In this document: positions 37,773-63,400 of the stretch, piece by piece
Layout: each line of letters opens with the position of its first letter
How positions within the stretch are numbered: position 1 is the stretch's first letter
Assembly (NCBI GenBank): GCA_965112735.1
Contig: OZ218964.1
Span: 1,984,001 to 2,048,000 of the forward strand
DNA from: Phaeosaccion multiseriatum
Lineage: Eukaryota; Protista; Ochrophyta, other classes
Direction of reading: 5' to 3'
Length of the DNA: 64,000 nt
Program-made: the position numbers and the translations under genes
Notes under the pieces: model-generated
The model's input: the letters and a program-made list of their open reading frames with translations, nothing else
Told to the model about the DNA's origin: nothing
Databases searched by the model: none

Positions 37773-37775
37773 TTT

Positions 37776-38175: not shown

Positions 38176-38178
38176 CTT

Positions 38179-39309
38179 TCATCCGTGTACCTGTGGGGGA
38201 GTCGTATCCGCCGTCAGCATGCGGCCCGCCCAGCCAAGAGCCTCCTGGACTGTCCTGTGGGCGTACTGGAAAGCCGTCGTCGACGACCAGCGCCCCCAAA
38301 ACTGGAGTGCGCGCCAGTCTGCTCCGCCAGCTGCAAGGGCTGTAGCACCTCCACTCCGCAGGGAGTGAGCGCTGATCCGGTTGGAGTCCCTCCCAGCCCT
38401 CGTTGCCCCAGCCTTGAGGGCTCTGCTGACTTGGTGGGAAGTGACGGATGTCCTTCGCCCCGTCTCGTCGGTGTAGGAGGCGAGGAGAGTGTGCCCTCCC
38501 CCAACTTCTCGAGGGCGTACCTGCTCTCCGCCGAAGTGGCAGCGGAGTGCGTCCACAGCAGCAAGTACCGGGCAAAGCGTGGGGGCGCCTGTCCTCTGGT
38601 GCGTACGTGCCTCTCCCTTCCTGAACGCATCTGTCTTGCTGCCTGTGAAAGCCAAAGTCACGCGCAGCATCCGCACCCCTCGGCCGACGGCTGCAAGGGC
38701 TTCTCTCCCTGAGTAGGCCCGGTTCGCGGCGTCTGTGAGCGAGACATCGAGAGGGGTTAGGATGTAGCGCACGTCTGTGCTCCCCCTCGTATTGGAGGGG
38801 GCAAACTCGCTCACACGCATCAGAAAGAACCACCCCAACCGGATGAGCGCCCAGAGCATGGTACCCTTCCTCCCCTCCGTGCTGAGCACGCCTCTGGTAG
38901 CCTCTAGAAGAGCTACGTCCACCGGAAGTTGTGGGATGGAGTCGCCATCGGTGAGTCTGTAACTCCGGAGAACCAACTGGACCTGCTTGCCCACCGCGGG
39001 GCCTTTCATCCCCTCCCGAGAAAACAGAGCATTCACCGCCGGTCCCTTCCCCTCCAACGTCGCCGCCTTGTTGCCTTTCTCCTCACGACACCACGCCAGA
39101 AAAGCCATGAAGATTTCCGAGTTCCGGGGGTCATCGTCTCCGAAAAGTAGAGGGGGTACCTCCACTAGTTGGCAGAACTCCATCCATTGGCGTTGGACCG
39201 ATGAGTAGCGATCCAGGGTGCTAGGGCGGAGACCGCTCGCTGCGGCTGCCCGAGCAGAGCTGAGAAGACCGCGTCCAAAACGATTGAGTCCGGCATGATT
39301 TGCGTCCAC
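38179..39309 (-). CDS. Tyrosine recombinase (DIRS/Ngaro-type YR); true start uncertain
   Basis: Full catalytic set: FFLMRVSE (R), GSKTD (K), SAHSLRSGGAT (HxxR), GRWSS (W), AFQY (Y). It has the N-terminal 'STLDRY...W..FC' motif and overlaps the pol 3' end. Confidence 0.95.
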   Translation of the reverse strand: MDANHAGLNRFGRGLLSSARAAAASGLRPSTLDRYSSVQRQWMEFCQLVEVPPLLFGDDDPRNSEIFMAFLAWCREEKGNKAATLEGKGPAVNALFSREGMKGPAVGKQVQLVLRSYRLTDGDSIPQLPVDVALLEATRGVLSTEGRKGTMLWALIRLGWFFLMRVSEFAPSNTRGSTDVRYILTPLDVSLTDAANRAYSGREALAAVGRGVRMLRVTLAFTGSKTDAFRKGEARTHQRTGAPTLCPVLAAVDALRCHFGGEQVRPREVGGGHTLLASYTDETGRRTSVTSHQVSRALKAGATRAGRDSNRISAHSLRSGGATALAAGGADWRALQFWGRWSSTTAFQYAHRTVQEALGWAGRMLTADTTPPQVHG

Positions 39310-41537
39310 TGAGTGAGGGGCTGTAGGTGAGGGGCAATGGGGGAGGAGCGGTCAGTTCCGATGAGATTTTCAATCCAATCACGGCTGAGGTCATCGGGGA
39401 TAAGGTTGATGCGCCCGGGGACATGGACGGTGTCGAGGCTGCACCGAGCACCGATCTCCAGGAGGCCCACCAGCCCTGCCAAGCCGTTGCTGATGGAGCT
39501 GTTGGGGGCCCCCTGGTTCTCTACCCAAGACAAGCTGCTGGTGTTGTCGCCACGCACTAGCACCGCTGAGAGGTCGAAAGCTGTTGGATGTTGGAGCCAG
39601 AAGGTGCAGAGGCCCGTAACGATCACGCCCATCTCCAAGTCGTTTACAGTGATCAATTTCGGGACCGTATGGTGTCGGGCTACTACCTCCGCAGGCCAGC
39701 GCCACTGTGCGAACATGGAGGCTTCTGCCCATACAATTCCCCCTCCCCAGTCAGACGCGTCTCCGTCGAGGCAAACGTCCGGTTGGCGAGGGACTAGTAG
39801 CTCCAAAGGGCACACCAGGATAGAGGGATCTTTCACCCCCCACACGCAGATAAGATGCCGCCAGCGCTGGAGGTCGAAGAGGGCGTCGTCGTCCAGAAAG
39901 AGCTTCGTACGCCCGGCAAAACGACCCGTACCACAGCCTCGGGTGAGATTGGTGAGCTGACGAAGCATGTAACGGCCGGGGCGAATGCAGAAGCTGATGC
40001 TGCGGAGCTTGCCGATAAAAGATTGAAGCTCCTTCAGCGTGCAAACGGTGCGAGTTGGAGGCCACTCAGCCAACAGAGTGTGCAGTTCGGCGAGCTTGTC
40101 GGGACGCAGAGAGGCAGTGCCGGCCTCCGTGTCGATCATGATGCCCAAAACTCGCTGCACGGAACGCCAGGGGCCCTCCTTCCCATGCTTCGCCAGATTG
40201 ATGCAGGAGGAAACATGTGGATTTTCCCCAGGCCAGCCGAAGAGGTTGTAGTGCATCGCCGTGATGATTCTGCTGAGCTGGAGGAGGGGGGCAGCTCGCT
40301 CGGCGGAGGGGAGGCCCCGTCGAGCTGCTTTAGCGGCTATGAGGTCGTCGCCGTGAACCACAGCATGGTGCTCTGGAATTTCCCCAACCGCCGTCGGAGT
40401 ACCCCGTAACTGTCGCCGTTGGATTGGCCGTTGCTCCTCCACATCAATCAGCTCCATGCCCGGGATGAGGCCGTTGCAACAAGCAGGGATGACGAGATGA
40501 GTGGTGAGAGCCGTAGCGCAGATGACGGCGACGAGACTCTGGGCCAAGACGAAGTAGAAAGAGGGGCTAGAGCAAGGGCCAAATCCGCAGCGCAAGTCGA
40601 AAACGCACACTGCTCCAACGACCGAGCAGAAGAAAGGCCAGAGGCCGGCCTGGCGGGAGTAGAAGATCCAGTTGAACGCAGAGCTGACGTCGGTCTTGGA
40701 GATGAGAATATCCCACTCGGAGGGGTCGAGAGAAAGGCTCCGCCGAACCAAGTAAGTGAGGAATTCCGTTAAAGCGTCGTGGCCCTTCATGTTGACTAAA
40801 GCCTCCTTGTCGGTCTGGCTGTTGGACGTAGGCTCTCCGTCGGAAGAGGCGAAGGTGGGGTCGGTGATGAGGCGCCACTCGCCGCTCTTCTTTTGGAGGA
40901 GGCCTAGGGGGTTGGGGCGCAAGTCCGGAAAAACCTGGCGCGCCAGCTCCACCGGTACCAGCAACACTTTCCCCTCCAACGAGCTAGTCACAGCGAGGTC
41001 CTCCAGCACCGTAGGATGCTCTCGTCCCGAGGGGTGGTTCCCGTACGCGTCTCGTTGGGCGGAAGGGACGGAGAAGAAGGTGCCAGGGACGGTGGCACCG
41101 TTGGTGGTAAGCTCATGGAGATGTGACCATAAAGGGACGTTGCCGAAGTAGCGCTCAATCCGTGCGGCGTCGAAGTAGGTGGGAGCGAAGGGAGGGCCTA
41201 GCCAAGCAAGGTAGGCCCCCAAGTCTCCGTGGAAGGCGATGAGGCCACGACCGTGGAGCTCGACGACGGAAGATGAAAAACTTTTCTCCCCATTGGCGCG
41301 GCGTCCAAATGCTGCGTCACTGAGGAAAGTCCGCTCCACCCACGCCCGATCAGCCGGCCGATGGTAGCACGGGACTTCGGGGGGCCGACGAGGCGGCCGT
41401 TCCGACCCTCGAGTAGCCAAGCCGCTCACCAACGTGTGCTCCGGAGGGCGGCGTGGGGGCCGGCCCTCGTTCCCCTCAGAGCCCTCTCCCCCTATCCCTG
41501 AAGGCACGATGAGAGGTGACACCGTGCCAGGGCCCCC
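39165..41537 (-). CDS. pol: Reverse transcriptase-RNase H, in frame with gag behind one TGA
   Basis: RT motifs: PLGLLQKKSGEWRLITD, SKTDVSSAF, LRCGFGPCSSP, HGDD, VLGIMIDT, LQSFIGKL. RNase H motifs: DGDASDWGGG, NDLE, VRGDN, HVPGRINLIPDDLSR. Confidence 0.95.
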   Translation of the reverse strand, partial: GGPGTVSPLIVPSGIGGEGSEGNEGRPPRRPPEHTLVSGLATRGSERPPRRPPEVPCYHRPADRAWVERTFLSDAAFGRRANGEKSFSSSVVELHGRGLIAFHGDLGAYLAWLGPPFAPTYFDAARIERYFGNVPLWSHLHELTTNGATVPGTFFSVPSAQRDAYGNHPSGREHPTVLEDLAVTSSLEGKVLLVPVELARQVFPDLRPNPLGLLQKKSGEWRLITDPTFASSDGEPTSNSQTDKEALVNMKGHDALTEFLTYLVRRSLSLDPSEWDILISKTDVSSAFNWIFYSRQAGLWPFFCSVVGAVCVFDLRCGFGPCSSPSFYFVLAQSLVAVICATALTTHLVIPACCNGLIPGMELIDVEEQRPIQRRQLRGTPTAVGEIPEHHAVVHGDDLIAAKAARRGLPSAERAAPLLQLSRIITAMHYNLFGWPGENPHVSSCINLAKHGKEGPWRSVQRVLGIMIDTEAGTASLRPDKLAELHTLLAEWPPTRTVCTLKELQSFIGKLRSISFCIRPGRYMLRQLTNLTRGCGTGRFAGRTKLFLDDDALFDLQRWRHLICVWGVKDPSILVCPLELLVPRQPDVCLDGDASDWGGGIVWAEASMFAQWRWPAEVVARHHTVPKLITVNDLEMGVIVTGLCTFWLQHPTAFDLSAVLVRGDNTSSLSWVENQGAPNSSISNGLAGLVGLLEIGARCSLDTVHVPGRINLIPDDLSRDWIENLIGTDRSSPIAPHLQPLTQWTQIMPDSIVLDAVFSALLGQPQRAVSALAPWIATHRSNANGWSSAN

Positions 41538-43262
41538 TCACCACCATGGTACCCCCGGAAGGCCGCCAAGACGGGCAGCGATGTTGTTGGTATGGGCCTT
41601 CTCCGCGGCGGTAGGAGCTTTGGAATCCCGCATGCCGCTCCGAAGGTGATTGACGGCTGTGGACTTCTGAGCAGTAGAGAGGGTGCCAGGGGTGCAGGGG
41701 GCGTAAGGGCATGAGCCAGACGAGGCCTCGGCGCACGACTGGGTCTTTAGCAGGGTGGTACAGGGTTTCAGAGCGCCATTCCCACGTCCGCCTCCCCCTC
41801 CGTTGCTGTTGCGTGTCCCCCCCAAGTCCATATCACGCAGCAGGCACGTGAGGAGGCCACGTTGGACGATGAGGGCCGCCGGGGAAGCGTAGTGGTCGAG
41901 CAGAGCGTGAAGAGAGAAGACAGGAGCGGTGTCGTAGGAAGCGGGAGGGAGGCTTTGGCAGCTGAGCCACTTAGCCGAATTGATGGAGTGGAGGTCGAGG
42001 AGAGCGTTGGTCGTGGAGCACAGGATGTCGGGGGGCATCCCTAGGGCCGAGGAGTCGCTGCGAGTGCACAGCTCGTCGAGGGTCGTAGAGAACTCGTCGA
42101 ACTCGTTGATAAAGTTGGCGTTCTCGGGGTAGACCAAACGGATGACGCTGACGAAGTTGTCGACAGTTGTCCGTAGGGCAGCGAACGAGCGAGGGAGGGG
42201 GCGAGCGACCGTAGGGAGTGCGATCACCGCGCCTCCTGCTTCTGCGCTCGAGCGTTGTAGGTCCGAATGCTCCAAGCGCAGAGCGGCGCTGAGCGCCGTG
42301 GTGCGCTCGCGGGGGGTGCAGCACTGAAGCTCGAAACCAGCAGGGATCCCAAACCGACCTTGGAGGAGCCCAGTGATGGCTTTGGGGTCGAACGCGACGT
42401 CTCGTGGGCTCATGAGCGTCTGCACGGCTGCAGTGACGCCGTGAGCGCCTTGGCGACGCACGTGAGAGACCTTGCCACCGTTAAGTAGGATAGCTAATGG
42501 GGCGACGGATTTACCTTTGTCTTCGCGGGTCGTGGTGGCGGAGGTGGCCGCTGTAGCCTTGGCCTCAGCGAGGCGAAGCTGCGCCAGCTCCGTCTCCGCT
42601 GTACGTCTCTCTAACTCAAGCTTATCCTCTGCTTCCGCGCGGTGGCGCTCACGATCTCGAAGAAAACGACGATGCTCGCGCTCAGCTGCTTCCTCCTCCC
42701 GAATCGCGAGAAGGGCCGCCTCGGAGAGGGGGGCCGAAGGCGAATGGGAGGAAGGTTGGGGAGGCAAGTGAGGTGCTGCCATCGTAGAAGAAGTCTGAAC
42801 CTTGGGCTCCGAATGAAGGCGAGCAGGGCCCGACGGAAGAGACGTGGTAGAAGTAGTAGGGAAGAGGGTGTGGAGGAGTGAGGCTGAAGTCGCCGGTTGG
42901 GCAACAACGCCTACTGCGGCGAGGTCTGCGAACGTCGAAACGGTCACGAGGTGCCAGCGAACGGATTCCTCCGCCGGCGAAGTGGGCAGAGAAGAGAGCT
43001 CACTCGGAGGGTTGGTGGAGGCCACCGCAAGCCACTCCTCCCAGACGTCTTGAGCGTAGATGTCGTCCGTGGGAAGGGAGAGGACGTGGTAGGAGGCCTC
43101 CGTGTAGTGACTTTTCCCTGAGCGAACCAGAATTGCTGGACGAAAAGAACCCTGAGACGACTTGTCCTTGTAGATGACGAGCGCTGCTTCCCCGTTGTTG
43201 GGACGGTGGGCGGCGACCCGAAGGAGCCTCGCGGCGTCCGATGAAGTGTCAAGAGGTGACAT
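41538..43262 (-). CDS. gag: Gag-like ORF1 (574 aa from ATG): Tudor-like N-terminus, coiled coil, C-terminal Cys cluster
   Basis: First ORF after the A repeat, with ATG at 43262. It has an E/R-rich coiled coil and a C-x8-C-x7-C-x4-C cluster near the C-terminus. The gag call is positional. Confidence 0.8.
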   Translation of the reverse strand: MSPLDTSSDAARLLRVAAHRPNNGEAALVIYKDKSSQGSFRPAILVRSGKSHYTEASYHVLSLPTDDIYAQDVWEEWLAVASTNPPSELSSLPTSPAEESVRWHLVTVSTFADLAAVGVVAQPATSASLLHTLFPTTSTTSLPSGPARLHSEPKVQTSSTMAAPHLPPQPSSHSPSAPLSEAALLAIREEEAAEREHRRFLRDRERHRAEAEDKLELERRTAETELAQLRLAEAKATAATSATTTREDKGKSVAPLAILLNGGKVSHVRRQGAHGVTAAVQTLMSPRDVAFDPKAITGLLQGRFGIPAGFELQCCTPRERTTALSAALRLEHSDLQRSSAEAGGAVIALPTVARPLPRSFAALRTTVDNFVSVIRLVYPENANFINEFDEFSTTLDELCTRSDSSALGMPPDILCSTTNALLDLHSINSAKWLSCQSLPPASYDTAPVFSLHALLDHYASPAALIVQRGLLTCLLRDMDLGGTRNSNGGGGGRGNGALKPCTTLLKTQSCAEASSGSCPYAPCTPGTLSTAQKSTAVNHLRSGMRDSKAPTAAEKAHTNNIAARLGGLPGVPWW

Positions 43263-43980
43263 GGTAGGAAAAACTTTGGTTGTCTGGTGGCGTGCACGTG
43301 GGCCACACCCCCCAAAGAATTGGGCCACGGGAGAGAGAGGAGAAGGCGGAGAGGGTAGTAGGACGTCAGGAGAGTCCTACTGTGATAGGCTGGTGGTGGG
43401 GAAAGGGCGAAGAGGGCAAAAGGCGCCGGTACGCAACACCGGGGAGGCGGTCGGCACGCAACACCAGACACCGCTGTCCTAAGCCATAGAGCCCCACAAC
43501 ACCGGCGAAGGGAAAGAAAAGAAGAGTTCCGGCACGCAACACCGTGGAGACTGTCGGCACGCAACACCAGACACAGTCTCCCTAGCTCTTCCTCTCTCTT
43601 CCTCGAGGATCCCGGCTCGCAACACCAGGCGGATCCCCTTGGCCAACACAAGCGCTCTGTCCGGGCCCAGGACAAGAGGCTCGCTTTCCACCACACCAGT
43701 ATCTACTCTCCTCCTTGACAGTGTGCTCCACTCTTCCTGGACTCTGTCTCCGCCGCCTCAGTAAGTGACAGCACACGCCAAGGTCTCTCCTCTTCTGAAA
43801 AATCTAAATTCCCTGCTTCACTGACATACTGTACATCTCCCCAGAGGGGACCCCCCCCTTGGGGCGGTACCAAGCACCTACGCTGACGCTTCGCCCTGCT
43901 GGCTCCCATGTCTCCCACCTCGTCCTCGTCTCTGTTCCGCGAGAAACAAAGTTCCGTTGCTGCGCTGCTGAACAGGCTTT

Positions 43981-51970: not shown

Positions 51971-54900
51971 AACCGGCATTTGCCAGGAACACACACCCCA
52001 AACGAGGCAGTTGCTGGTCTTGATCTGCCCGCGCCGGGCACTGGCTCAGCACAATACGTCAAACTGACACACTACATCCCCACAACGAAGCCAAGTCGGG
52101 CATAGAATGGCCTCAAAATGCCCAATCTGGCACATGGCTGGACCCAAAACCGGAATTTGCCAGACACAAACACCTCAAACGAGGCAGTTGCTGGTCTTGA
52201 TATGCCCGCGCCGGGCACTGGCTCTGCACAATAGGCCTAACCAACACACTACATCCCCACAACAAAGCCATGTCGGGCATGGAATGGCCTCAAAACGCCC
52301 AATCTGGCACATGGCTGGACCCAAAACCGGAATTTGCAAGGCACAAACACCCAAAACGAGGCAGTTGCTGAGCTCGATATGCCCGCGCTATGCACTAGAT
52401 CAGCGCAACAGGCCTAACCAACACACTACAGGGCCACAACGAAGCCGAGTCGGGCATGGAGTGGCCTCAAAATGCCCAATCTGACCCTTGGCTGGACCCA
52501 AAACCAGCATTTGCGAAGTAAACACACCCCAAACGAGGCAGTTGCTGGCCTTGATATGCCCGCGCCGGGCACTGGCTCTGCACAATAGGCCTAACCAACA
52601 CACTACATGCCCATAACAAAGCCAAGTCGGGCATGGAGTGGCCTCAAAATGCCCAATCTGGCCCTTGCATGGCTGGACCTAAATTCAGCATTTATTAGGT
52701 AAAGACAACCCAAACAAGGCAGTTGCTGGCCTCGATATGCCCGCGCGGGGTGCTAGCTTCACTCTAATGGCCCAACCAACACACTGCATCCCCACAACGA
52801 AGCCGAGTCAGGCCTGGAGTGGCCTCAAAATGCCCAATGTGGCCCTTGGCTGGACACAAAATCGGTATATGCAAGGCACAAACACCCCAAACGAGGCAGT
52901 TGCTGAGCTCGATATGCCCGCGCTATGCACTAGATCAGCCCAACAGGCCTAACCAACACACTACATCCCCACAACGAAGCCGAGTCGGGCATGGAGTGGC
53001 CTCAAAATGCCCAATCTGACCCTTGGCTGGACCCAAAACCAGCATTTTGCGAAGTAAACACACCCCAAACGAGGCAGTTGCTGGTTATGATATGCCCGCG
53101 CCGGGCACTGGCTCAGCACAATAGGCCTAACCAACACACTACATGCCCATAACAAAGCCAAGCCGGGCATGGAGTGACCTCAAAATGCCCAATCTGACCC
53201 TTGGCTGGACCCAAAACCAGCATTTGCGAAGTAAACACACCCCAAACGAGGCAGTTAATTGCTGGCCTTGAGATGCCCGCGCCGGGCACTGACTCTGCAC
53301 AATAGGCCTAACCAACACACTACATGCCCATAACAAAGCCAAGTCGGGCATGGAGTGGCCTCAAAATGCCCAATCTGACCCTTGGCTGGACCCAAAACCG
53401 GAATTTGCCAGACACAAACACCTCAAACGAGGCAGTTGCTGGTCTTGATATGCCCGCGCCGAGCACTGGCTCAGCACAACAGGCCTAACCAACACACTAC
53501 ATGCCCATAACGAAGCCAAGTCGGGCATAGAATGGCCTCAAAATGCCCAATCTGGCACATGGCTGGACCCAAAACCGGAATTTGCCAGGCACAAACAACC
53601 CAAACGAGGCAGTTGCTGGTCTTGATATGCCCGCGCCGGGCACTGGCTCTGCACAATAGGCCTAACCAACACACTACATGCCCACAACGAAGCCAAGTCG
53701 GGCATAGAATGGCCTCAAAACGCGCAATCTGGCACATGGCTGGACCCAAAACCGGCATTTGCCAGGAACACACACCCCAAACGAGGCAGTTGCTGGTCTT
53801 GATCTGCCCGCGCCGGGCACTGGCTCAGCACAATACGTCAAACTGACACACTACATCCCCACAACGAAGCCAAGTCGGGCATAGAATGGCCTCAAAATGC
53901 CCAATCTGGCACATGGCTGGACCCAAAACCGGAATTTGCCAGGCACAAACAACCCAAACGAGGCAGTTGCTGGTCTTGATACACTCGCGCCGGGCACTGG
54001 CTCTGCACAATAGGCCTAACCAACACACTACATCCCCACAACAAAGCCAAGTCGGGCATGGAATGGCCTCAAAACGCCCAATCTGGCACATGGCTGGACC
54101 CAAAACCGGAATTTGCAAGGCACAAACACCCAAAACGAGGCAGTTGCTGAGCTCGATATGCCCGCGCTATGCACTAGATCAGCGCAACAGGCCTAACCAA
54201 CACACTACAGGGCCACAACGAAGCCGAGTCGGGCATGGAGTGGCCTCAAAATGCCCAATCTGACCCTTGGCTGGACCCAAAACCAGCATTTGCGAAGTAA
54301 ACACACCCCAAACGAGGCAGTTGCTGGCCTTGATATGCCCGCGCCGGGCACTGGCTCTGCACAATAGGCCTAACCAACACACTACATGCCCATAACAAAG
54401 CCAAGTCGGGCATGGAGTGGCCTCAAAATGCCCAATCTGGCCCTTGCATGGCTGGACCTAAATTCAGCATTTATTAGGTAAAGACAACCCAAACAAGGCA
54501 GTTGCTGGCCTCGATATGCCCGCGCGGGGTGCTAGCTTCACTCTAATGGCCCAACCAACACACTGCATCCCCACAACGAAGCCGAGTCAGGCCTGGAGTG
54601 GCCTCAAAATGCCCAATGTGGCCCTTGGCTGGACACAAAATCGGTATTTGCCAGGCACAAACAGCCGGTTCAGCAGCGCAGCAACGGAACTTTGTTTCTC
54701 GCGGAGCAGAGACGAGGGAGTGGGCGGGAAGCAACGAGGGCCCGAGGGGCAGTGCCGCGGGCGGCCCAGCCCCGAGGGGAGCGGCCTCTCCCCCGGGGAA
54801 CATATTACTTTTGTACCAAACTTAGGAATTTAGAAGAGGAGGAGCCTTGGAGTGTGTCGCCGCCTACTGAAGCAACGGAGACAGTGCACAGGTAAGGCGG

Positions 54901-54999
54901 GACACACTGCCAAGGAGGAGAGGTAGATACTGGTGTAGTGGAAAGCGAGCCTCAGTCCTGGGCCCGGACAGAGAGCTTCGTGTTGGCCAAGGGGACCCG

Positions 55000-55202
55000 C
55001 CTGGTGTTGAGTACCGGGGTCCTCGTGGGCGAGGGAAGGAGAGATAGGGAGACTGTGTCTGGTGTTGAGTGCCGACAGTGTCCACGGTGTTGAGTGCCGG
55101 AACTCTTCTTTTCTTTCCCTTTGCCGGTGTTGTGGGGCTCTCCGGCTAAGGAGCGGTGTCTGGTGTTGAGTGCCGACCGTCTCCCCGGTGTTGAGTGCCG
55201 GC
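55000..55202 (+). promoter_or_regulatory. Array of five leader hairpins GGUG-UUGAG-UGCC (candidate packaging signal)
   Basis: Five copies of ggtgttgagt(g/a)cc with complementary flanks upstream of gag. The array is retained in the non-autonomous copies. Confidence 0.5.
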
Positions 55203-55365
55203 GCCTCCTGCCCTCTTCGCTCTTTCCACACCACCAGCCTATCGCAGTAGGACCCCCCCTGACGTCCTACTACCCTTTCCGCCTTCTCCTCTCTCTCCCG
55301 TGGCCCAATTCTTTGGGGGGTGTGGCCCACGTGCACGCCACCAGACAACCAAAGCTTTTCCTACC

Positions 55366-57111
55366 ATGTCACCTCTCGGCACTTCCTCGGACGCCAAGAG
55401 GCTCCTTCGGGTCCCTGACCACCGTCCCAACAACGGAGAAGCAGCGTTCGTCATCTACAAGGACAAGTCACCTAAGGCCTTTTTTCGGCCAGCAATTCTG
55501 GTTCGCTCAGGGAACAGCCACTACATGGAGGCCATCTACCACGTCCTCTCCCTGCCCACGGACGACATCATCTACGCTCAAGACGTCTGGGAGGAGTGGC
55601 TTGCGGTGGCCTCCACCAACCCTCCGAGTGAACTCTCTTCTCTGCCCACTTCACCGGCAGAGGAATCCGTTCGCTGGCACCTCGTGACCGCTCCAACGTT
55701 CACAGACCTCGCCACGGTAGGCGTGGTAGCCCAATCGGCGACTTCCGCTTCACACCTCCACACCCTCTTCCCTACCACTTCTACCACGTCTCTTCCTGCG
55801 GGCCCCGCTCGCCTTCACCCGGAGCCCAAGGTTCAGACATCTACAACGGCGGCACTCCGCACCGCCTCCTCTCCACCCCACCTGCCTCCCCAACCTTCCT
55901 CCCGTTCGCCTTCAGCCCCCCTCTCGGCGGCGGCCCTTCTCGCGATTCAGGAGGAGGAAGCAGCTGAGCGCGATCATCGTCGTTTCCTTCGAGATCGTGA
56001 GCGCCAACGCGCGGAAGCAGAGGATAAGCTCGAGTTAGAGAGACGTACAGCGGAGACTGAGCTGGCACAGCTTCGCCTCGCGGAGGCCAAGGCTACCGCG
56101 GCCACCTCCGCCACCACGACCCGCGAAGACAAAGGTAAATCCGTCGCCCCATTAGCTATCCTACTTAACGGTGGCAAGGTCTCTCACGTTCGTCGCCAAG
56201 GAGCTCATGGCGTCTCGGCCGCAGCGCAGACGCTCATGGGCCCGCGAGACGTCGCGTTCGACCCAAAAGCGATCACTGGGCTCCTTCAAGGACGGTTTGG
56301 CATCCCCGATGGTTTTGAGCTCCAATGCTGCACCCCTCGCGAGCGCACCACGGCGCTTAACGCCGCTCTCCGCTTGGAGCACTCGGACCTCCAGCGCTCG
56401 AGCGCAGAAGCAGGGGGCGCAGTCGTCGCTCTCCCTACGATCGCCCGCCCGCTCCCTCGCTCTTTCGCTGCTCTCCGGACCACCGTCGACAACTTCGTCA
56501 GCGTCATCCGCCTGGTCTACCCCGAGAACACCAACTTTATCGACGAGTTCGACGAGTTCTCTACGACCCTCGACGAACTCTGCACACGCAGCGACTCCTC
56601 GGCGCTAGGGATGCCTCCCGACATCCTGTGCTCCACCACCAACGCTCTGCTCGACCTCCACTCCACCACCTCAGCTAAGTGGCTCAGCTGCCAAAGCCTC
56701 CCGCCCGCTTCCTACGACACCGCTCCTGTCTTCTCTCTTTACGCTCTGCTCGACCACTACGCTTCCCCAGCGGCTCTCATCGTCCAGCGTGGTCTCCTCA
56801 CGTGCCTCCTGCGTGATGTGGACTTGGGGGGGACACGCAACGGCAATGGAGGGGGAGGAGCACGTGGGAATGGCGCCCTCAAGCCCTGTATCACCCTACT
56901 CAAGACCCAGTCTTGCACTGAAGCTTTGTCTGGCTCATGCTCTTTCGCGCCCTGTGCCCCTGGATCCCTCTCTACTCCCCAGAAGAACTCAGCCGTCTCT
57001 CACCTTAAGAGCGGCATGCGGGATCCCAAAGCCCCTACCCCTGCGGAGAGGTCCCACGCCACCAACATCGCTCTTCGCCTTGGCGGCCTTCCAACGGTAC
57101 CGTGGTGGTGA
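55366..57111 (+). CDS. gag: Gag-like ORF1 (581 aa from ATG)
   Basis: Homologue of 41538-43262, with ATG at 55366. It is divergent at the N-terminus and in the C-terminal Cys region. Confidence 0.8.
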   Translation: MSPLGTSSDAKRLLRVPDHRPNNGEAAFVIYKDKSPKAFFRPAILVRSGNSHYMEAIYHVLSLPTDDIIYAQDVWEEWLAVASTNPPSELSSLPTSPAEESVRWHLVTAPTFTDLATVGVVAQSATSASHLHTLFPTTSTTSLPAGPARLHPEPKVQTSTTAALRTASSPPHLPPQPSSRSPSAPLSAAALLAIQEEEAAERDHRRFLRDRERQRAEAEDKLELERRTAETELAQLRLAEAKATAATSATTTREDKGKSVAPLAILLNGGKVSHVRRQGAHGVSAAAQTLMGPRDVAFDPKAITGLLQGRFGIPDGFELQCCTPRERTTALNAALRLEHSDLQRSSAEAGGAVVALPTIARPLPRSFAALRTTVDNFVSVIRLVYPENTNFIDEFDEFSTTLDELCTRSDSSALGMPPDILCSTTNALLDLHSTTSAKWLSCQSLPPASYDTAPVFSLYALLDHYASPAALIVQRGLLTCLLRDVDLGGTRNGNGGGGARGNGALKPCITLLKTQSCTEALSGSCSFAPCAPGSLSTPQKNSAVSHLKSGMRDPKAPTPAERSHATNIALRLGGLPTVPWW

Positions 57112-57166
57112 GGGGGCCCTGGTACGGTGTCACCTCTCATCGTGCCTTCAGGGATTGGGGGAGAGG
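57109..57166 (+). promoter_or_regulatory. Predicted stop-codon readthrough signal (UGA, G5 spacer, stem-loop/H-type pseudoknot)
   Basis: CCCUG/CAGGG and GUACGGUG/CAUCGUGC form a stem. Loop CCUCU is complementary to downstream AGAGG. The same fold is available at 41483-41540 on the minus strand. Confidence 0.6.
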
Positions 57167-59484
57167 GCCCTGCAGGGAACGAGGGCCGGCCCCCACGCCG
57201 CCCTCCGGAGCACACGTTGGTGAGCAGCTTGGCTCCTCGAGGGTTGGAACGGCCGCCCCGTCGGCCCCCCGAAGTCCCGTGCTACCAAAGGCCTGCTGAT
57301 CGGGCGTGGGTGGAGCGGACATTCCTCAGTGACGCAGCATTTGGACGCCGCGCCAATGGGGAGGAAAGTTTTTCATCTTCCGTCGTCGAGCACCATGGCC
57401 GTGGCCTCATCGCCTTCCACGGAGACTTGGGGGCCTACCTTGCTTGGCTCGGCCCTCCCTTCGCTCCCACCTACTTCGACGCCGCACGGATTGAGCGCTA
57501 CTTCGGCAACGTCCCTTTATGGTCACATCTCCATGAGCTTACCACCAACGGTGCCACCGTCCCTGGCACCTTCTTCTCCGTCCCCTCCGCCCAACGAGAC
57601 GCGTACGGGAACCACCCCTCGGGACGAGAGCATCCTACGGTGCTGGAGGACCTCGCTGTGACTAGCTCGTTGGAGGGGAAAGTGTTGCTGGTACCGGTGG
57701 AGCTGGCGCGCCAGGTTTTTCCGGACTTGCGCCCCAACCCCCTAGGCCTCCTCCAAAAGAAGAGCGGCGAGTGGCGCCTCATCACCGACCCCACCTTCGC
57801 CTCTTCCGACGGAGAGCCTACGTCCAACAGCCAGACCGACAAGGAGGCTTTAGTCAACATGAAGGGCCACGACGCTTTAACGGAATTCCTCACTTACTTG
57901 GTTCGGCGGAGCCTTTCTCTCGACCCCTCCGAGTGGGATATTCTCATCTCCAAGACCGACGTCAGCTCTGCGTTCAACTGGATCTTCTACTCCCGCCAGG
58001 CCGGCCTCTGGCCTTTCTTCTGCTCGGTCGTTGGAGCAGTGTGCGTTTTCGACTTACGCTGCGGATTTGGCCCTTGCTCTAGCCCCTCTTTCTACTTCGT
58101 CTTGGCCCAGAGTCTCGTCGCCGTCATCTGCGCTACGGCTCTCACCACTCATCTCGTCATCCCTGCTTGTTGCAACGGCCTCATCCCGGGCATGGAGCTG
58201 ATTGATGTGGAGGAGCAACGGCCAATCCAACGGCGACAGTTACGGGGTACTCCGACGGCGGTTGGGGAAATTCCAGAGCACCATGCTGTGGTTCACGGCG
58301 ACGACCTCAGTGCCGCCAAAGCAGCTCGACGGGGCCTCCCCTCCGCCGAGCGGGCCGCCCCCCTCCTCCAGCTCAGCAGAATCATCACGGCGATGCACTA
58401 CAACCTCTTCGGCTGGCCTGGGGAAAATCCACATGTTTCCTCTTGCATCAATCTGGCGAAGCATGGGAAGGAGGGCCCCTGGCGTTCCGTGCAGCGAGTT
58501 TTGGGCATCATGATCGACACGGAGGCCGGCACTGCCTCTCTGCGTCCCGACAAGCTCGCCGAACTGCACGCTCTGTTGGCGGAGTGGCCTCCAACTCGCA
58601 CCGTTTGCACGCTGAAGGAGCTTCAATCTTTTATCGGCAAGCTCCGCAGCATCAGCTTCTGCATTCGCCCCGGCCGTTACATGCTTCGTCAGCTCACCAA
58701 TCTCACCAGAGGCTGTGGTACGGGTCGTTTTACCGGGCGTACGAAGCTCTTTCTGGACGACGACGCCCTCTTCGACCTCCAGCGCTGGCGGCATCTTATC
58801 TGCGTGTGGGGGGTGAAAGATCCCTCTATCCTGGTGTGCCCTTTGGAGCTACTAGTCCCTCGCCAACCGGACGTTTGCCTCGACGGAGACGCGTCTGACT
58901 GGGGAGGGGGAATTGTATGGGCAGAGGCCTCCATGTTCGCACAGTGGCGCTGGCCTGCGGAGGTAGTAGCCCGACACCATACGGTCCCGAAATTGATCAC
59001 TGTAAACGATTTGGAGATGGGCGTGATCGTTACGGGCCTCTGCACCTTCTGGCTCCAACATCCAACAGCTTTCGACCTCTCAGCGGTGCTAGTGCGTGGC
59101 GACAACACCAGCAGCTTGTCTTGGGTAGAGAACCAGGGGGCCCCCAACAGCTCCATCAGCAACGGCTTGGCAGGGCTGGTGGGCCTCCTGGAGATCGGTG
59201 CTCGGTGCAGCCTCGACACCGTCCATGTCCCCGGACGCATCAACCTTATCCCCGATGACCTCAGCCGTGATTGGATTGAAAATCTCATCGGAACTGACCG
59301 CTCCTCCCCCATTGCCCCTCACCTACAGCCCCTCACTCAGTGGACGCAAATCATGCCGGACTCAATCGTTTTGGACGCGGTCTTCTCAGCTCTGCTCGGG
59401 CAGCCGCAGCAAGCGGTCTCCGCCCTAGCACCTTGGATCGCTACTCATCGGTCCAACGTCAATGGATGGAGTTCTGCCAACTAG
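57112..59484 (+). CDS. pol: Reverse transcriptase-RNase H, in frame with gag behind TGA 57109-57111
   Basis: Same RT and RNase H motifs as copy 1. The first in-frame ATG is only at 57859. Confidence 0.95.
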   Translation, partial: GGPGTVSPLIVPSGIGGEGPAGNEGRPPRRPPEHTLVSSLAPRGLERPPRRPPEVPCYQRPADRAWVERTFLSDAAFGRRANGEESFSSSVVEHHGRGLIAFHGDLGAYLAWLGPPFAPTYFDAARIERYFGNVPLWSHLHELTTNGATVPGTFFSVPSAQRDAYGNHPSGREHPTVLEDLAVTSSLEGKVLLVPVELARQVFPDLRPNPLGLLQKKSGEWRLITDPTFASSDGEPTSNSQTDKEALVNMKGHDALTEFLTYLVRRSLSLDPSEWDILISKTDVSSAFNWIFYSRQAGLWPFFCSVVGAVCVFDLRCGFGPCSSPSFYFVLAQSLVAVICATALTTHLVIPACCNGLIPGMELIDVEEQRPIQRRQLRGTPTAVGEIPEHHAVVHGDDLSAAKAARRGLPSAERAAPLLQLSRIITAMHYNLFGWPGENPHVSSCINLAKHGKEGPWRSVQRVLGIMIDTEAGTASLRPDKLAELHALLAEWPPTRTVCTLKELQSFIGKLRSISFCIRPGRYMLRQLTNLTRGCGTGRFTGRTKLFLDDDALFDLQRWRHLICVWGVKDPSILVCPLELLVPRQPDVCLDGDASDWGGGIVWAEASMFAQWRWPAEVVARHHTVPKLITVNDLEMGVIVTGLCTFWLQHPTAFDLSAVLVRGDNTSSLSWVENQGAPNSSISNGLAGLVGLLEIGARCSLDTVHVPGRINLIPDDLSRDWIENLIGTDRSSPIAPHLQPLTQWTQIMPDSIVLDAVFSALLGQPQQAVSALAPWIATHRSNVNGWSSAN

Positions 59485-60470
59485 TGGAGGTACCACCTCT
59501 ACTTTTCGGAGACGATGACCCCCGGAACTCGGAAATCTTCATGGCTTTTCTGGCGTGGTGTCGTGAGGAGAAGGGCAATAAGGCGGCGACGTTGGAGGGG
59601 AAGGGACCGGCGGTGAATGCTCTGTTTTCTCGGGAAGGGATGAAAGGCCCCGCGGTGGGCAAGCAGGTGCAGTTGGTTCTCCGGAGTTACAGACTCACCG
59701 ATGGCGACTCCATCCCGCAGCTTCCGGTGGATGTAGCTCTTCTAGAGGCTACCAGAGGCGTGCTCAGCACGGAGGGGAGGAAGGGTACCATGCTCTGGGC
59801 GCTCATCCGGTTGGGGTGGTTTTTTCTGATGCGTGTGAGCGAGTTTGCCCCCTCCAATACGAGGGGGAGCGCAGACGTGCGCTACATCCTAACCCCTCTC
59901 GATGTCTCGTTCACAGACGCCTCGAACCGGGCCTACTCAGGGAGAGAAGCCCTTGCAGCCGTCGGCCGAGGGGTGCGGATGCTGCGCGTGACTTTGGCTT
60001 TCACAGGCAGCAAGACAGATGCGTTCAGGAAGGGAGAGGCACGTACGCACCAGAGGACAGGCGCCCCCACGCTTTGCCCGGTACTTGCTGCTGTGGACGC
60101 ACTCCGCTGCCACTTCGGCGGAGAGCAGGTACGCCCTCGAGAAGTTGGGGAAGGGCACACTCTCCTCGCCTCCTACACCGACGAGACTGGGCGAAGGACA
60201 TCCGTCACTTCCCACCAAGTCAGCAGAGCCCTCAAGGCTGGGGCAACGAGGGCTGGGAGGGACTCCAACCGGATCAGCGCTCACTCCCTGCGGAGTGGAG
60301 GTGCTACAGCCCTTGCAGCGGGCGGAGCAGACTGGCGCGCACTCCAGTTTTGGGGGCGCTGGTCGTCGACGACGGCTTTCCAGTACGCCCACAGGACCGT
60401 CCAGGAGGCTCTTGGCTGGGCGGGCCGCATGCTGACGGCAGATACGACTCCCCCGCAGGTACACGGATGA
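59340..60470 (+). CDS. Tyrosine recombinase (YR); true start uncertain
   Basis: R-K-HxxR-W-Y catalytic set is intact. Only about four amino-acid differences from copy 1. Confidence 0.95.
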   Translation: MDANHAGLNRFGRGLLSSARAAAASGLRPSTLDRYSSVQRQWMEFCQLVEVPPLLFGDDDPRNSEIFMAFLAWCREEKGNKAATLEGKGPAVNALFSREGMKGPAVGKQVQLVLRSYRLTDGDSIPQLPVDVALLEATRGVLSTEGRKGTMLWALIRLGWFFLMRVSEFAPSNTRGSADVRYILTPLDVSFTDASNRAYSGREALAAVGRGVRMLRVTLAFTGSKTDAFRKGEARTHQRTGAPTLCPVLAAVDALRCHFGGEQVRPREVGEGHTLLASYTDETGRRTSVTSHQVSRALKAGATRAGRDSNRISAHSLRSGGATALAAGGADWRALQFWGRWSSTTAFQYAHRTVQEALGWAGRMLTADTTPPQVHG

Positions 60471-63400
60471 AAGGGGGTGAAGCGGGGCGTAGGGCACTCA
60501 CCATGGTGACTTCCCTACCCTCCGCTACATCCGAAATGCAGTGTCCGCCCTCTGTGATAGAAGCGGCCCTCTTCTCAGACCAACTGGCCTCCGAAGAAGG
60601 AGCCCCTCACAGGGCTGCACTCTCCTAATGAAGAGTCCTTCCCCCAACATCCCCAGCCTTTGACTCACCGGCGCCCCATTCACAACTGACGACTGTGTGG
60701 ATGAGGAGCCCTACCACTTGCTCACTCACAGCTGGCGACGCCCTGGATGTTGAGGTCCGTCACTTCCCGCGACGACACTGAGGAGCACCTGTTCTTCCCC
60801 CGGCTCTCGCCGACGACAAGGGAGGAGGCCCCTCACTGCATTCCCGCCCCCACCCGAGCGCCACGACGGCGCGAAACCCCAAACGAGGCAGTTGCTGAGC
60901 TCGATATGCCCGCGCTATGCACTAGATCAGCGCAACAGGCCTAACCAACACACTACATCCCCACAACGAAGCCGAGTCGGGCATGGAGTGGCCTCAAAAT
61001 GCCCAATCTGACCCTTGGCTGGACCCAAAACCAGCATTTTGCGAAGTAAACACACCCCAAACGAGGCAGTTGCTGGTTATGATATGCCCGCGCCGGGCAC
61101 TGGCTCAGCACAATAGGCCTAACCAACACACTACATGCCCATAACAAAGCCAAGCCGGGCATGGAGTGACCTCAAAATGCCCAATCTGACCCTTGGCTGG
61201 ACCCAAAACCGGAATTTGCCAGACACGAACACCTCAAACGAGGCAGTTGCTGGTCTTGATATGCCCGCGCTGTGCGCTACTACAGCACAGTGGGCCTACC
61301 CGACACACTACGACGCCACAACGAAGCCAAGTCGGGCATGGAATGGCCTCAAAATGCCCAATTGGCACATGGCTGGACCCAAAACCGGAATTTGTGAGGA
61401 ACACACACCCCAAACGAGGCAGTTGCTGGTCCTGATCTGCCCGCGCTGTGCGCTATTACAGCACAGTGGGCCTACCAAACACACTACGACGCCACAACGA
61501 AGCCAAGTCGGGCATGGAGTGGCCTCAAAATGCCCAATCTGGCCCTTGCATGGCTGGACCTAAATTCAGCATTTATTAGGTAAAGACAACCCAAACAAGG
61601 CAGTTGCTGGCCTCGATATGCCCGCGCGGGGTGCTAGCTTCACTCTAATGGCCCAACCAACACACTGCATCCCCACAACGAAGCCGAGTCAGGCCTGGAG
61701 TGGCCTCAAAATGCCCAATGTGGCCCTTGGCTGGACACAAAATCGGTATTTAAAGGCACAAACACCCCAAACGAGGCAGTTGCTGAGCTCGATATGCCCG
61801 CGCTATGCACTACATCAGCGCAACAGGCCTAACCAACACACTACATCCCCACAACGAAGCCGAGTCGGGCATGGAGTGGCCTCAAAATGCCCAATCTGAC
61901 CCTTGGCTGGACCCAAAACCAGCATTTGCGAAGTAAACACACCCCAAACGAGGCAGTTGCTGATTATGATATGCCCGTGCCGGGCACTGGCTCAGCACAA
62001 CAGGCCTAACCAACACACTACATGCCCATAACAAAGCCAAGTCGGGCATGGAGTGCCCTCAAAATGCCCAATCTGACCCTTGGCTGGACCCAAAACCGGA
62101 ATTTGCCAGACACAAACACCTCAAACGAGGCAGTTGCTGGTCTTGATCTGCCCGCGCCGGGCACTGGCTCAGCACAACAGGCCTAACCAACACACTACAT
62201 GCCCACAACGAAGCCAAGTCGGGCATAGAATGGCCTCAAAATGCCCAATCTGGCACATGGCTGGACCCAAAACCGGAATATGCGAGGAACACACACCCCA
62301 AACGAGGCAGTTGCTGGTCTTGATCTGCCCGCGCTGTGCGCTATTACAGCACAGTGGGCCTACCCAACACACTACATGCCCACAACGAAGCCGAGTCGGG
62401 CCTGGAGTGGCCTCAAAATGCCCAATCTGACCCTTGGCTGGAATCAAAACCAGCATTTGCGAAGTAAACACACCCCAAACGAGGCAGTTGCTGGCCTTGA
62501 TATGCCCACGCCGGGCACTGGCTCAGCACAACAGGCCTAACCAACACACTACATGCCCATAACAAAGCCAAGTCGGGCATGGAGTGGCCTCAAAATGCCC
62601 AATCTGACCCTTGGCTGGACCCAAAACCGGAATTTGCCAGACACAAACACCTCAAACGAGGCAGTTGCTGGTCTTGATATGCCCGCGCCGGGCACTAGCT
62701 CAGCACAATAGGCCTAACCAACACACTACATCCCCACAACGAAGCCAAGTCGGGCATGGAATGGCCTCAAAACGCCCAATCTGGCACATGGCTGGACCCA
62801 AAACCGGCATTTGCCAGGCACAAACAACCGAAACGAGGCAGTTGCTGGTCTTGATATGCCCGCGCCGGGCACTGGCTCAGCACAACAGGCCTAACCAACA
62901 CACTACATGCCCACAACGAAGCCAAGTCGGGCATAGAATGGCCTCAAAATGCCCAATCTGGCACATGGCTGGACCCAAAACCGGAATTTGCCAGGCACAA
63001 ACAACCCAAACGAGGCAGTTGCTGGCCTTGATATGCCCGCGCCGGGCACTGGCTCTGCACAATAGACGTAACCAACACACTACATCCCCACAACAAAGCC
63101 AAGTCGGGCATGGAATGGCCTCAAAACGCGCAATCTGGCACATGGCTGGACCCAAAACCGGCATTTGCCAGGAACACACACCCCAAACGAGGCAGTTGCT
63201 GGTCTTGATCTGCCCGCGCTGTGCGCTATTACAGCACAGTGGGCCTACCCAACACACTACGACGCCACAACGAAGCCAAGTCGGGCATGGAGTGGCCTCA
63301 AAATGCCCAATCTGGCCCTTGCATGGCTGGACCTAAATTCAGCATTTATTAGGTAAAGACAACCCAAACAAGGCAGTTGCTGGCCTCGATATGCCCGCGC

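Follow-up and report, generated by a model that had tools for sequence, protein, structure and literature searches.

An in-frame UGA and a conserved downstream hairpin between gag and pol of an Ngaro-like retrotransposon point to stop-codon readthrough

In the 64,000-nucleotide stretch of Phaeosaccion multiseriatum DNA analyzed here (the window), we identified a tyrosine-recombinase (YR) retrotransposon whose reverse transcriptase (RT) is most likely made by occasional stop-codon readthrough, because gag and pol share one reading frame and are split by a single UGA and a conserved hairpin. Programmed readthrough of this UGA, giving a Gag-Pol protein of ~1370 aa, is the best explanation of the compared sequences, and we regard it as probable. 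The in-frame layout is conserved between two element families, selection beyond the stop is specific to the gag frame, the hairpin carries compensatory changes, and distant relatives have signals of the readthrough type.

Organization of the element and its copies

The window element is an Ngaro-like retrotransposon of the DIRS order with the gene order gag, RT/RNase H, YR. The window contains two copies, which together with the homologous copies on C8 and C10 constitute family 1 (n=4). The main features of the window copies are as follows.

54780..60880 (approximate ends), + strand: copy A of the tyrosine-recombinase retrotransposon, located in a 177-bp satellite
55366..57108, + strand: gag-like ORF of 581 codons counted from its first ATG; the frame is open from 55195
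57109..57111, + strand: single in-frame UGA between gag and pol, present in all four family 1 copies and both family 2 copies
57112..59484, + strand: pol ORF, 790 codons, comprising a linker of ~130 aa followed by reverse transcriptase and RNase H
59340..60470, + strand: tyrosine recombinase ORF, which overlaps pol by 145 nt and lies in its -1 frame
36810..43800, - strand: copy B including the 3' A2-B2 repeat unit, homologous to copy A
43328-41541, 41540-41538, 41532-41496 and 41537-39165, - strand: gag, UGA, hairpin and pol of copy B, respectively
39309-38179, 37618-37301 and 37248-36810, - strand: YR, A2 and B2 of copy B, respectively

The borders of copy A are marked by the satellite, which ends near 54775 and picks up again near 60866-60892. 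The third ORF matches the Pfam family Phage_integrase (E 2.4e-6, 27.9 bits, cut-off 27.1), has homologs in the third ORFs of the relatives described below, and has no early ATG. A search of pol and YR against Pfam gave no match to a Dam or other methyltransferase at E <=0.1, an absence that weighs less than a presence would. No protease was found by Pfam in the window element; as none is encoded, a Gag-Pol fusion may stay uncleaved. Downstream of the body of copy B lie a duplicate of the 5' leader (37618-37301) and, next to it, one of the 3' end (37248-36810), and an adjacent deleted element would have the same appearance. The A2-B2 unit is missing from copy A, and the joint of 55119 to 60474 is present in the genomic read contigs, which represent four genomic runs of one sample. 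The assignment to the DIRS order made by the first-pass annotation of this DNA was correct, and the organization is Ngaro-like in the gene order, the lack of a methyltransferase match, and the possible split direct repeats. The element looks active.

A single UGA within a continuous gag-pol frame

Gag (open frame 55195-57111) and pol (57112-59484) are read in one phase, with one TGA separating them. This agrees with the first-pass annotation, which had described an in-frame gag and pol with a single UGA in both window copies; the sequence at 57100-57170 is as quoted there, with C for T at 57123 in copy B. The genomic read contigs contain no variant at TGA 57109-57111. The gag-like ORF has no Pfam match, and its pN/pS between alleles is ~0.2. 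The RT encoded by pol is highly diverged and is missed by a direct search with Pfam RVT_1. Its motifs were located by alignment, including A (SKTDVSSAF), B (FGPCSSPSFY), and C (HGDD, which is YVDD in relatives) for RT and DGDAS, NDLE, and RGDN for RNase H, and RVT_1 (cut-off 29.6) is matched by the profile relatives L052 and L066 with 36.4 and 41.4 bits, respectively.

The first ATG in pol is codon 250 (57859) in four of four family 1 copies. The conserved N-terminal pol blocks and the K/R..I.D motif of RT (residues ~222-226) precede it and motif A (D283) follows it, which bears out the earlier claim that the first pol ATG, then placed at residue ~245, follows the first RT motifs. In the second family the first pol ATG is codon 161; thus the positions differ between the families, and both are downstream of conserved pol blocks.

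The second family, with pol 62% and gag 31-34% identical to family 1, keeps the layout: it shares the stop, the 5-nt spacer, and the bulged 13-bp hairpin, whose inner stem has undergone compensatory changes. The UGA is placed one codon later in both of its copies, and the register of ..PWW(Q)-UGA-G.PG and the hairpin is kept despite the divergence of gag. The pol linker contains a 21-codon indel between the families, and a decayed fragment on C16 has CGA in place of the stop. The UGA and the stem, whose conservation in other copies the first-pass annotation had named as a check, are retained in the four copies of family 1 and the two of family 2, the stem with compensatory changes.

The hairpin downstream of the stop

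The elements of the junction following the UGA in copy A are as follows.

57112..57116, + strand: G-rich spacer of 5 nt, GGGGG (GGGCG in family 2)
57117..57153, + strand: bulged hairpin with an outer stem (57117-57120/57150-57153) and an inner stem (57121-57129/57138-57146)
57130-57137 and 57147-57149, + strand: unpaired loop and bulge of the hairpin, respectively
57162..57166, + strand: AGAGG, the proposed partner of the loop CCUCU in a pseudoknot that is not supported

The hairpin begins 5 nt past the stop and is composed of stems of 4 bp and 9 bp, separated on the 3' side by a bulge of 3 nt, and the stem starts at +9 in both families. Folded alone, it has a predicted energy of -18.6 kcal/mol (z -3.8), confirming the bulged 13-bp stem proposed earlier, and it belongs to the best 0.6% of all 40-nt windows in the gag-pol RNA. 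Folding of a 72-nt context gives no stability beyond that of shuffled sequence (z ~0), and the outer stem has a competitor in which the spacer pairs with GGGCCC further downstream.

Across only four distinct sequences, including a decayed fragment, the 13 pairs of the hairpin have 97-100% of cells paired, and in a control with the 3' partners slid by 1-3 columns the pairing falls to 43-56% of cells. Three pairs of the inner stem are changed on both sides and two on one side, and the encoded peptide changes from TVSPLI to ADGPST. The T/C difference at 57123 keeps the pairing as U.G vs C-G, as had been noticed for the window copies, with C found in three of the four family 1 copies.

The first-pass annotation had also predicted that the loop CCUCU pairs with AGAGG to form a pseudoknot. 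The two segments can pair, yet no better than chance, since an equal or better 5-bp match appears in 21% of downstream shuffles for family 1 and in 30% for the sister family. This pairing involves only 85% of cells, and in family 2 its best register is one position off. In addition, AGAGG lies within the conserved GAGGGCCC, which encodes E-G-P too and can alternatively pair with the spacer. An H-type pseudoknot is not supported, given the chance-level pairing, the family-specific register, and the competing long-range pairing.

Selection on the region of pol without ATG

We calculated pN/pS for pol codons 1-249 in each of the three frames. For the four more diverged copy pairs, the values were 0.24-0.35 in the gag frame vs 0.76-1.9 in the other two frames, while the near-identical pair of copy B and the C8 copy has too few changes to be informative. 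On these 249 ATG-less codons, purifying selection acts in the gag frame alone, and they are therefore translated. All intact copies of both families have three open ORFs, with pN/pS of 0.1-0.35 in the informative comparisons. The low variation right after the stop among copies is no separate sign of readthrough; it reflects only that pol is far more conserved than gag.

Gag-pol junctions in distant relatives

Relatives from metagenomes, all having a homologous recombinase ORF, often carry an in-frame stop between gag and pol. Such a stop recurs in L045, L046, L049, and eight AT-rich relatives. The GC-rich relatives L045 and L046 have UAG-GGA and a very strong hairpin after the stop, which ranks 1st of 3409 windows of its own gag-pol RNA in L046 and within the top 0.29% in L045. 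In the AT-rich relatives with an in-frame stop, the UGA is followed by C in eight of eight cases (CUA, CUG or CUU in six; CAA in two, as CAA-CCA and CAA-UUG), and no significant hairpin was detected within 60 nt after the stop; the gags of these eight are only ~30-35% identical to one another. The contexts UGA-CUA/CUG/CUU and UGA-CAA are known as type II and type I leaky contexts, respectively (PMC13517186).

Other arrangements were found in the same comparison of frames, from which L048 was left out. In five relatives gag overlaps pol in a different frame, and in L047 gag is in a different frame and ends just upstream of pol. L051 has a gag-homologous domain and pol within one uninterrupted ORF of 1037 codons, and a Gag-Pol fusion is therefore a viable product in this group.

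It is conceivable, with a chance slightly below even, that readthrough is a general and ancient Gag-Pol strategy of a large Ngaro-like clade, whose lineages would swap between all three classical types of signal depending on the base composition of the host, some lineages having fused the ORFs or moved to overlapping frames. The corresponding division of signals, by which AT-rich lineages would use UGA-CUA or UGA-CAA and GC-rich lineages a stop with a G-rich spacer and a hairpin, is proposed just as tentatively. If this is true, the sole control of RT dosage in the particle would be the Gag:Gag-Pol ratio that readthrough sets, because these elements have no protease.

Proposed expression of pol and alternative explanations

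In the proposed mechanism, the full-length RNA would be translated from the gag AUG at 55366, and most ribosomes would halt at UGA 57109 to yield Gag of ~581 aa. In a minority of ribosomes the UGA would be decoded by a near-cognate tRNA, which other systems suggest would carry Trp, Arg or Cys, and translation would stay in frame to produce Gag-Pol of ~1372 aa. The candidate stimulator is a 3' module consisting of the 5-nt G-rich spacer and the bulged 13-bp hairpin, whose 9-bp inner stem has its first nucleotide at +13 (counting from the stop's U), approximately at the mRNA entry point when the stop is in the A site. We infer from these comparisons the occurrence and efficiency of readthrough, the identity of the inserted amino acid, and the role of the hairpin. 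As for the first-pass proposal of structure-assisted UGA readthrough, comparison supports it well through the sister-family layout, the compensatory hairpin, the frame-specific selection, and the signals in relatives; its pseudoknot part is not supported. To our knowledge, UGA-G is not among the classic leaky tetranucleotides, which counts against readthrough. So do a stem nearer to the stop (+9) than in MoMLV (+12), the unremarkable 72-nt fold with its competing pairing, the few sequences behind the covariation, and the relatives whose gag and pol are in different frames.

Expression of pol from a spliced mRNA, with an AUG-bearing exon joined at or just after the UGA, or from a subgenomic mRNA via an internal promoter, would leave the stop never read through. 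We consider this unlikely. The host genome is intron-rich, as illustrated by multi-exon HSP70 genes; the YR ORF also has no early ATG, so that the element needs some non-standard expression route anyway; and the Tca2 element has an internal promoter at its junction (PMC2194720). Against this route, selection in the gag frame begins directly after the stop, the ..PWW-stop-G.PG sequence and the spacing from stop to hairpin are kept with gag only 34% identical, and the junctions of families 1 and 2 show no conserved AG-type acceptor. Moreover, the leaky contexts of the distant relatives are exactly at the in-frame stop, and splicing needs none.

Production of a free Pol by independent initiation at a non-AUG codon, or by termination-reinitiation, just past the UGA appears more improbable still. 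Shortly past the stop there are GTG, CTG, and ACG codons, among them the GTG at 57127 at which ORF calling starts pol, and a hairpin 3' of a weak start codon can boost initiation. However, the GTG at 57127 is inside the 5' arm of the hairpin and not upstream of it, and the residues from the stop to this codon (G-G/R-P-G) are kept between families. Scanning ribosomes would have to cross 1.7 kb of gag together with its AUGs, and the fusion exists as a single ORF in L051.

There is very little probability that the stop and hairpin have no programmed role and represent a nonsense mutation inherited by recent, inactive or decaying copies next to a chance GC-rich hairpin. The small number of copies (four close ones and two of the sister family), the ease with which GC-rich RNA folds, the 72-nt fold being no better than shuffles, and the CGA at the stop position of the decayed C16 fragment are all in line with such an origin. 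It is contradicted by the three ORFs that remain open in every intact copy of both families at the low pN/pS values given above, by the persistence of the stop across 38% pol divergence, by the compensatory changes in the hairpin, and by the recurrence of the same design in unrelated relatives.

Finally, decoding of the UGA as selenocysteine, or as sense throughout the host, would fit a UGA followed by a hairpin and is scarcely credible, given the lone in-frame TGA among ~1430 gag-pol codons, a 376-codon YR frame free of TGA, the absence of in-frame TGA from long host HSP70 exons (so the host uses the standard code), the UAG used instead by GC-rich relatives, and the dependence of eukaryotic selenocysteine insertion on a SECIS element in the 3'-UTR, not on an adjacent hairpin.

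Implications for elements of the DIRS order

Readthrough is a known kind of mechanism, and its use in the DIRS order appears to be new. We found no mention of stop-codon readthrough in the searchable literature on YR elements; an earlier mention is possible, the original Ngaro description being outside this scope. RT expression in the DIRS order is essentially unstudied, and reviews mention only whether the ORFs overlap or not. The conserved in-frame stop and recoding signals provide a concrete, testable model of Pol expression, in which Pol as a minor Gag-Pol fusion would imply a retrovirus-like control of stoichiometry without a protease or a DDE integrase. Gene callers split or truncate pol at the stop, and hence correct annotation needs knowledge of the in-frame UGA. 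New test cases for the stimulation of readthrough by 3' RNA structure would come from the compact +9 hairpin and from the range of natural signals in relatives.

Comparison with known systems

The element resembles the Ngaro-like superfamily in the order of gag, RT/RNase H, and YR, in having no methyltransferase match, and possibly in split direct repeats, as suggested by copy B (A1 .. B1 A2 B2), and differs in an RT so diverged that Pfam RVT_1 misses it. Ngaro ORFs are usually non-overlapping (PMC3266345).

Tca2, a Ty1/copia retrotransposon of Candida albicans, has an in-frame gag-UGA-pol arrangement with a predicted 3' pseudoknot, and its Pol is made from full-length RNA (PMC2194720). The window element shares with it the in-frame gag-UGA-pol and a predicted downstream structure. 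The Tca2 junction alone gave no readthrough in a Saccharomyces cerevisiae reporter, and an internal promoter was found (PMC2194720); this precedent is a ground for caution about our readthrough interpretation. In contrast to Tca2, the window element, known here from sequence alone, shows covariation across families and recurrence in relatives.

The gag-pol junction of MoMLV is a type III signal in the Beier-Grimm classification and yields a minor Gag-Pol fusion (PMC13517186). Both elements have gag and pol in one frame with a single stop, then G, a short purine-rich spacer, and a compact GC-rich structure, and the relatives L045 and L046 share the UAG-GGA start of the spacer. On the other hand, the window element has UGA vs UAG, a spacer of 5 nt vs 8, and a structure at +9 vs +12, and a bulged hairpin is supported, not an H-type pseudoknot. 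It has no sequence similarity to the MoMLV element, has no protease, and relies for integration on a tyrosine recombinase, not on a DDE integrase.

In the type II signals of alphaviruses, coltiviruses, and dicistroviruses, a UGA is followed by a stem-loop starting +2 to +16 downstream (Firth et al. 2011, cited in PMC13517186). The window element differs from these viruses in having UGA-G and not UGA-C and a hairpin of 37 nt vs extended structures of 70-180 nt. It shares with them the UGA stop and the downstream stem-loop, and the UGA-CUA or UGA-CUG of its AT-rich relatives is exactly as in Sindbis virus, ONNV, and PSIV.

Organization of the retrotransposon

We classify the element in the window as a DIRS-order tyrosine-recombinase retrotransposon with Ngaro-like organization. 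The first-pass annotation had already placed it in the DIRS order, and the placement is borne out by an ORF for a tyrosine recombinase (YR) that matches Pfam Phage_integrase, by the motifs A, B and C of reverse transcriptase (RT) and the RNase H motifs that emerge when related elements of this genome are aligned with it, by the relatives identified, and by the fact that no methyltransferase was found in the element. The copies of this family (family 1) in the window, and their insertion site, are the following.

Features of family 1 and of its insertion site
About 54780-60880, plus strand: copy A, whole, breaking up the 177-bp satellite
55195 to the TGA at 57109-57111, plus strand: gag open frame of copy A, first ATG at 55366
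57112-59484, plus strand: pol of copy A, 790 codons, in a frame identical to that of gag
59340-60470, plus strand: YR ORF of copy A, in the -1 frame, overlapping the end of pol by 145 nt (Pfam Phage_integrase, E 2.4e-6)
43328-41541 (gag), 41540-41538 (TGA), pol to 39165, and 38179-39309 (YR), minus strand: copy B, by homology to copy A
1800-35000, 53000-54775 and 60866-63500: large 177-bp satellite array, the insertion site of the element family

Several related fragments in the window are also inserted in the satellite array. On its 3' side, copy B is flanked by two repeats (36810-37618), the first of the 5' leader and the second of the 3' end; with them, its layout resembles the split direct repeats (A1..B1-A2-B2) found in Ngaro and PAT elements. 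In addition, one genomic read contig contains a joint of 55119 to 60474, in which the 5' leader is fused to the 3' end and 5354 nt are skipped. This arrangement, shared by the contig and the flank of copy B, represents either the A2-B2 portion of such repeats or a non-autonomous derivative with an internal deletion.

The reverse transcriptase is not recognized by Pfam, and the gag and pol proteins of this and the sister family described below have no significant Pfam match. A PDB sequence-profile search gave no match either, and an AlphaFold model based on a three-sequence alignment was unusable (pLDDT 31).

The four copies of family 1 (A, B, and those on contigs C8 and C10) carry two gag alleles, one in A and C10 and the other in B and C8. 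The alleles differ by ~109 substitutions in the last 300 gag codons, and pol differs by only 1-3%, a contrast that points to recombination of lineages close to the border of gag and pol.

The in-frame UGA and the host genetic code

The junction sequence reported in the first-pass annotation was found as given at 57100-57170, with gag and pol in frame and one TGA between them. It had been described as common to both copies; indeed, the stop and hairpin of copy B are identical, save for a C at the position that corresponds to T57123. The C8 and C10 copies also have C at this position. When other copies were checked for the UGA and the covarying stem, as had been proposed, both were found to be kept on C8, on C10 and in the sister family.

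The junction is covered by unitigs from four genomic sequencing runs of one sample, the only runs found, and they show no variant at the stop; the TGA is therefore not an assembly error. Since it is the only in-frame TGA in about 1430 gag-pol codons of the element, and since in-frame TGA is absent from long host HSP70 exons, we infer that UGA is a stop in the host code.

Translation of the ATG-less start of pol

The first pol ATG had been placed near residue 245, past the first RT motifs. It is codon 250 in all four family 1 copies, 3' of the K/R..I.D motif; in the sister family it is codon 161. The position thus differs between the families, and in both it is downstream of conserved pol blocks that include the K/R..I.D of the RT fingers. 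Over the 249 codons without an ATG, the four copy pairs with more divergence gave a pN/pS of 0.24-0.35 in the frame of gag, versus 0.76-1.9 in the other two frames (B and C8 are nearly identical, with too few changes to tell). When gag and pol were aligned between the families as one protein, with the stop written as X, a 21-codon indel was found to separate them in the pol linker. The frame-specific pN/pS, the non-conserved ATGs and the linker indel together indicate that the 249 ATG-less codons are translated in the gag frame.

Covariation of the post-stop hairpin

The sister family (family 2, copies L037 and L038 on contigs C12 and C7 of the same genome) has a pol that is 62% identical to that of family 1, and a gag that is only 34% identical. 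A single TGA separates its gag, with 699 open codons, from its 772-codon pol in one and the same frame. The stop is one codon later (..PWW-Q-UGA versus ..PWW-UGA in family 1), and the distance from stop to hairpin is 5 nt in both families (GGGCG in family 2 versus GGGGG in family 1). The hairpin architecture is also common to both: CCCU/AGGG forms the outer helix, three nucleotides bulge out on the 3' side, and the inner stem occupies matching alignment columns.

Across four distinct sequences (two family 1 variants, family 2, and one decayed fragment on C16), the 13 hairpin pairs are 97-100% paired, versus only 43-56% in a control with the 3' partners slid by 1-3 columns. Three inner-stem pairs have changed on both sides, twice from G-C to C-G and once in the series C-G, U.G, U-A; two further pairs have changed on a single side, and there is one unpaired cell. 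At the protein level, the stem encodes TVSPLI in family 1 and ADGPST in family 2. Because the pairs persist while the peptide changes, comparison of the families indicates that the hairpin is kept for RNA pairing rather than for the encoded protein. When every 40-nt window of each gag-pol RNA was scanned without bias, the post-stop hairpin was within the best 0.6% in family 1 and the best 1.8% in family 2.

The pseudoknot proposed between the hairpin loop (CCUCU) and AGAGG at 57162-57166 did not hold up. Among shuffles, 21% for family 1 and 30% for family 2 contain a 5-bp Watson-Crick match of the loop to the downstream G-rich stretch, and the best register is not the same in the two families. 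The proposed partner sits within GAGGGCCC, which is also conserved as E-G-P codons, and in the 72-nt minimum-energy fold GAGGGCCC pairs with the spacer instead of the loop; this fold does not exceed shuffled sequences in stability. We also rejected the low variation among the four copies after the stop as a signal of RNA structure, as the drop marks the border of the fast-evolving gag and the slow-evolving pol. Synonymous-site identity between the families just 3' of the stop (0.64-0.70) is not exceptional.

GGGCCC palindromes occur on both sides of the family 1 hairpin (57114-57119 and 57165-57170), and family 2 has a perfect 12-nt palindrome, GGAGGGCCCUCC, downstream of it (4778-4789 in L038). 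These palindromes would allow a long-range helix enclosing the hairpin, or pairing of two RNA molecules.

Gag-pol junctions in distant relatives

A word-based homologue search with pol returned nothing, and an exhaustive profile search with the pol core identified 8637 relatives among 1.84 billion proteins. Relatives on metagenome contigs exceed the RVT_1 cut-off and have a third ORF homologous to the window recombinase. Among the contigs with the best profile matches and 41 loci from a metagenome scan, we examined all those that had enough upstream sequence. Three relatives in the same genome (L039-L041, 29-34% pol identity) were discarded as comparators, as their gag and pol differ in frame, are separated by a gap and look partly decayed.

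In two GC-rich loci from a single metagenome (L045, L046), gag and pol are in frame across a UAG, after which come GGA, a spacer of 6-9 nt and a strong hairpin. No other 40-nt structure in the entire L046 RNA is as stable as this hairpin (rank 1 of 3409), and in L045 it is in the top 0.29% of 40-nt windows. In another locus, L049, a gag of 562 codons is followed in frame by UGA-C and pol, and a hairpin is absent. Eight AT-rich contigs (L052, L053, L056, L061, L062, L065, L066 and L078) also have gag-UGA-pol in frame, and their long gags are mutually only about 30-35% identical. In all eight the UGA is followed by C, with CUA, CUG or CUU in six and CAA in two (CAA-CCA, CAA-UUG). UGA-CUA/CUG/CUU are the type II leaky contexts of alphaviruses and dicistroviruses, and UGA-CAA is the type I context of tobamoviruses (PMC13517186).

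Other layouts were also observed. In five loci (L060, L063, L072, L079 and L081) gag overlaps pol in another frame and ends 29-133 nt past the start of the open pol frame, which suggests frameshifting rather than readthrough; in L047 gag is in a different frame and ends just upstream of pol. The layout of L048 could not be assessed. Because some relatives are out of frame, the in-frame stop is common but not universal in the group. A single 1037-codon ORF without a stop (L051, 157-3267) contains a gag-homologous domain and RT/RNase H, and thus represents a natural sense-codon version of the junction.

The gag C-termini carry motifs that may be nucleic-acid-binding tails: a CCCH-type zinc-finger-like C..C..C-[KR]F-[KV]-H immediately ahead of the stop in the GC-rich L045, L046 and L049, H-[PS]-E..S..CP in the AT-rich relatives, and C-x-FAPC in the window family.

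Proposed mechanism and alternatives

The most economical reading of the junction, and probably the correct one, is programmed UGA readthrough. Most ribosomes translating gag would terminate at the UGA, and a fraction would insert an amino acid there and continue, to yield a Gag-Pol fusion of ~1372 aa. When the stop codon occupies the A site, the mRNA channel would enclose the outer 4-bp helix (+9 to +12), and the 9-bp inner stem would start at +13. Since no protease was found in the element, the fusion may remain intact and uncleaved.

Alternatively, pol could be translated from a spliced or subgenomic mRNA. The YR ORF lends this some plausibility, as it likewise lacks an early ATG (none before codon 43, in 59340-60470 and in minus-strand 38179-39309), so that the element uses at least one other unconventional expression route; no X_XXY_YYZ slippery heptamer is present in the 145-nt pol/YR overlap, and YR may be expressed by frameshifting, splicing or reinitiation. 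We consider a separate mRNA unlikely, however, since frame-specific selection begins immediately 3' of the stop, the junction is conserved inside the fast-evolving gag, and distant relatives have textbook leaky contexts at the equivalent position. Initiation of pol at a non-AUG codon, against which the same three observations stand, is more improbable still.

In the AT-rich relative L066 (3944-3952), a TAA terminates pol and is directly followed, without a change of frame, by the recombinase ORF, possibly as a second in-frame stop junction (pol-stop-YR).

Comparison with known systems

Gag-Pol readthrough is an established mechanism of gamma- and epsilonretroviruses, and some LTR retrotransposons have been proposed to use it. 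Four integrase-bearing LTR elements sampled in this genome each have gag and pol fused in a single frame. Stop-codon readthrough is not mentioned in the papers searched on YR retroelements, which deal with Cafeteria Ngaros, DIRS and Ngaro elements of fungi, VIPER and TATE, Xenopus and an overview of DIRS1. Ngaro ORFs are usually non-overlapping (PMC3266345). The element resembles Tca2 of Candida albicans, which has gag-UGA-pol and a predicted pseudoknot; the Tca2 junction alone gave no readthrough in yeast (PMC2194720), which we take as a direct warning. With regard to spacing, the structures of MoMLV, VEEV and CTFV start at +12 (PMC13517186), and the predicted +13 start of the inner stem is near this position.
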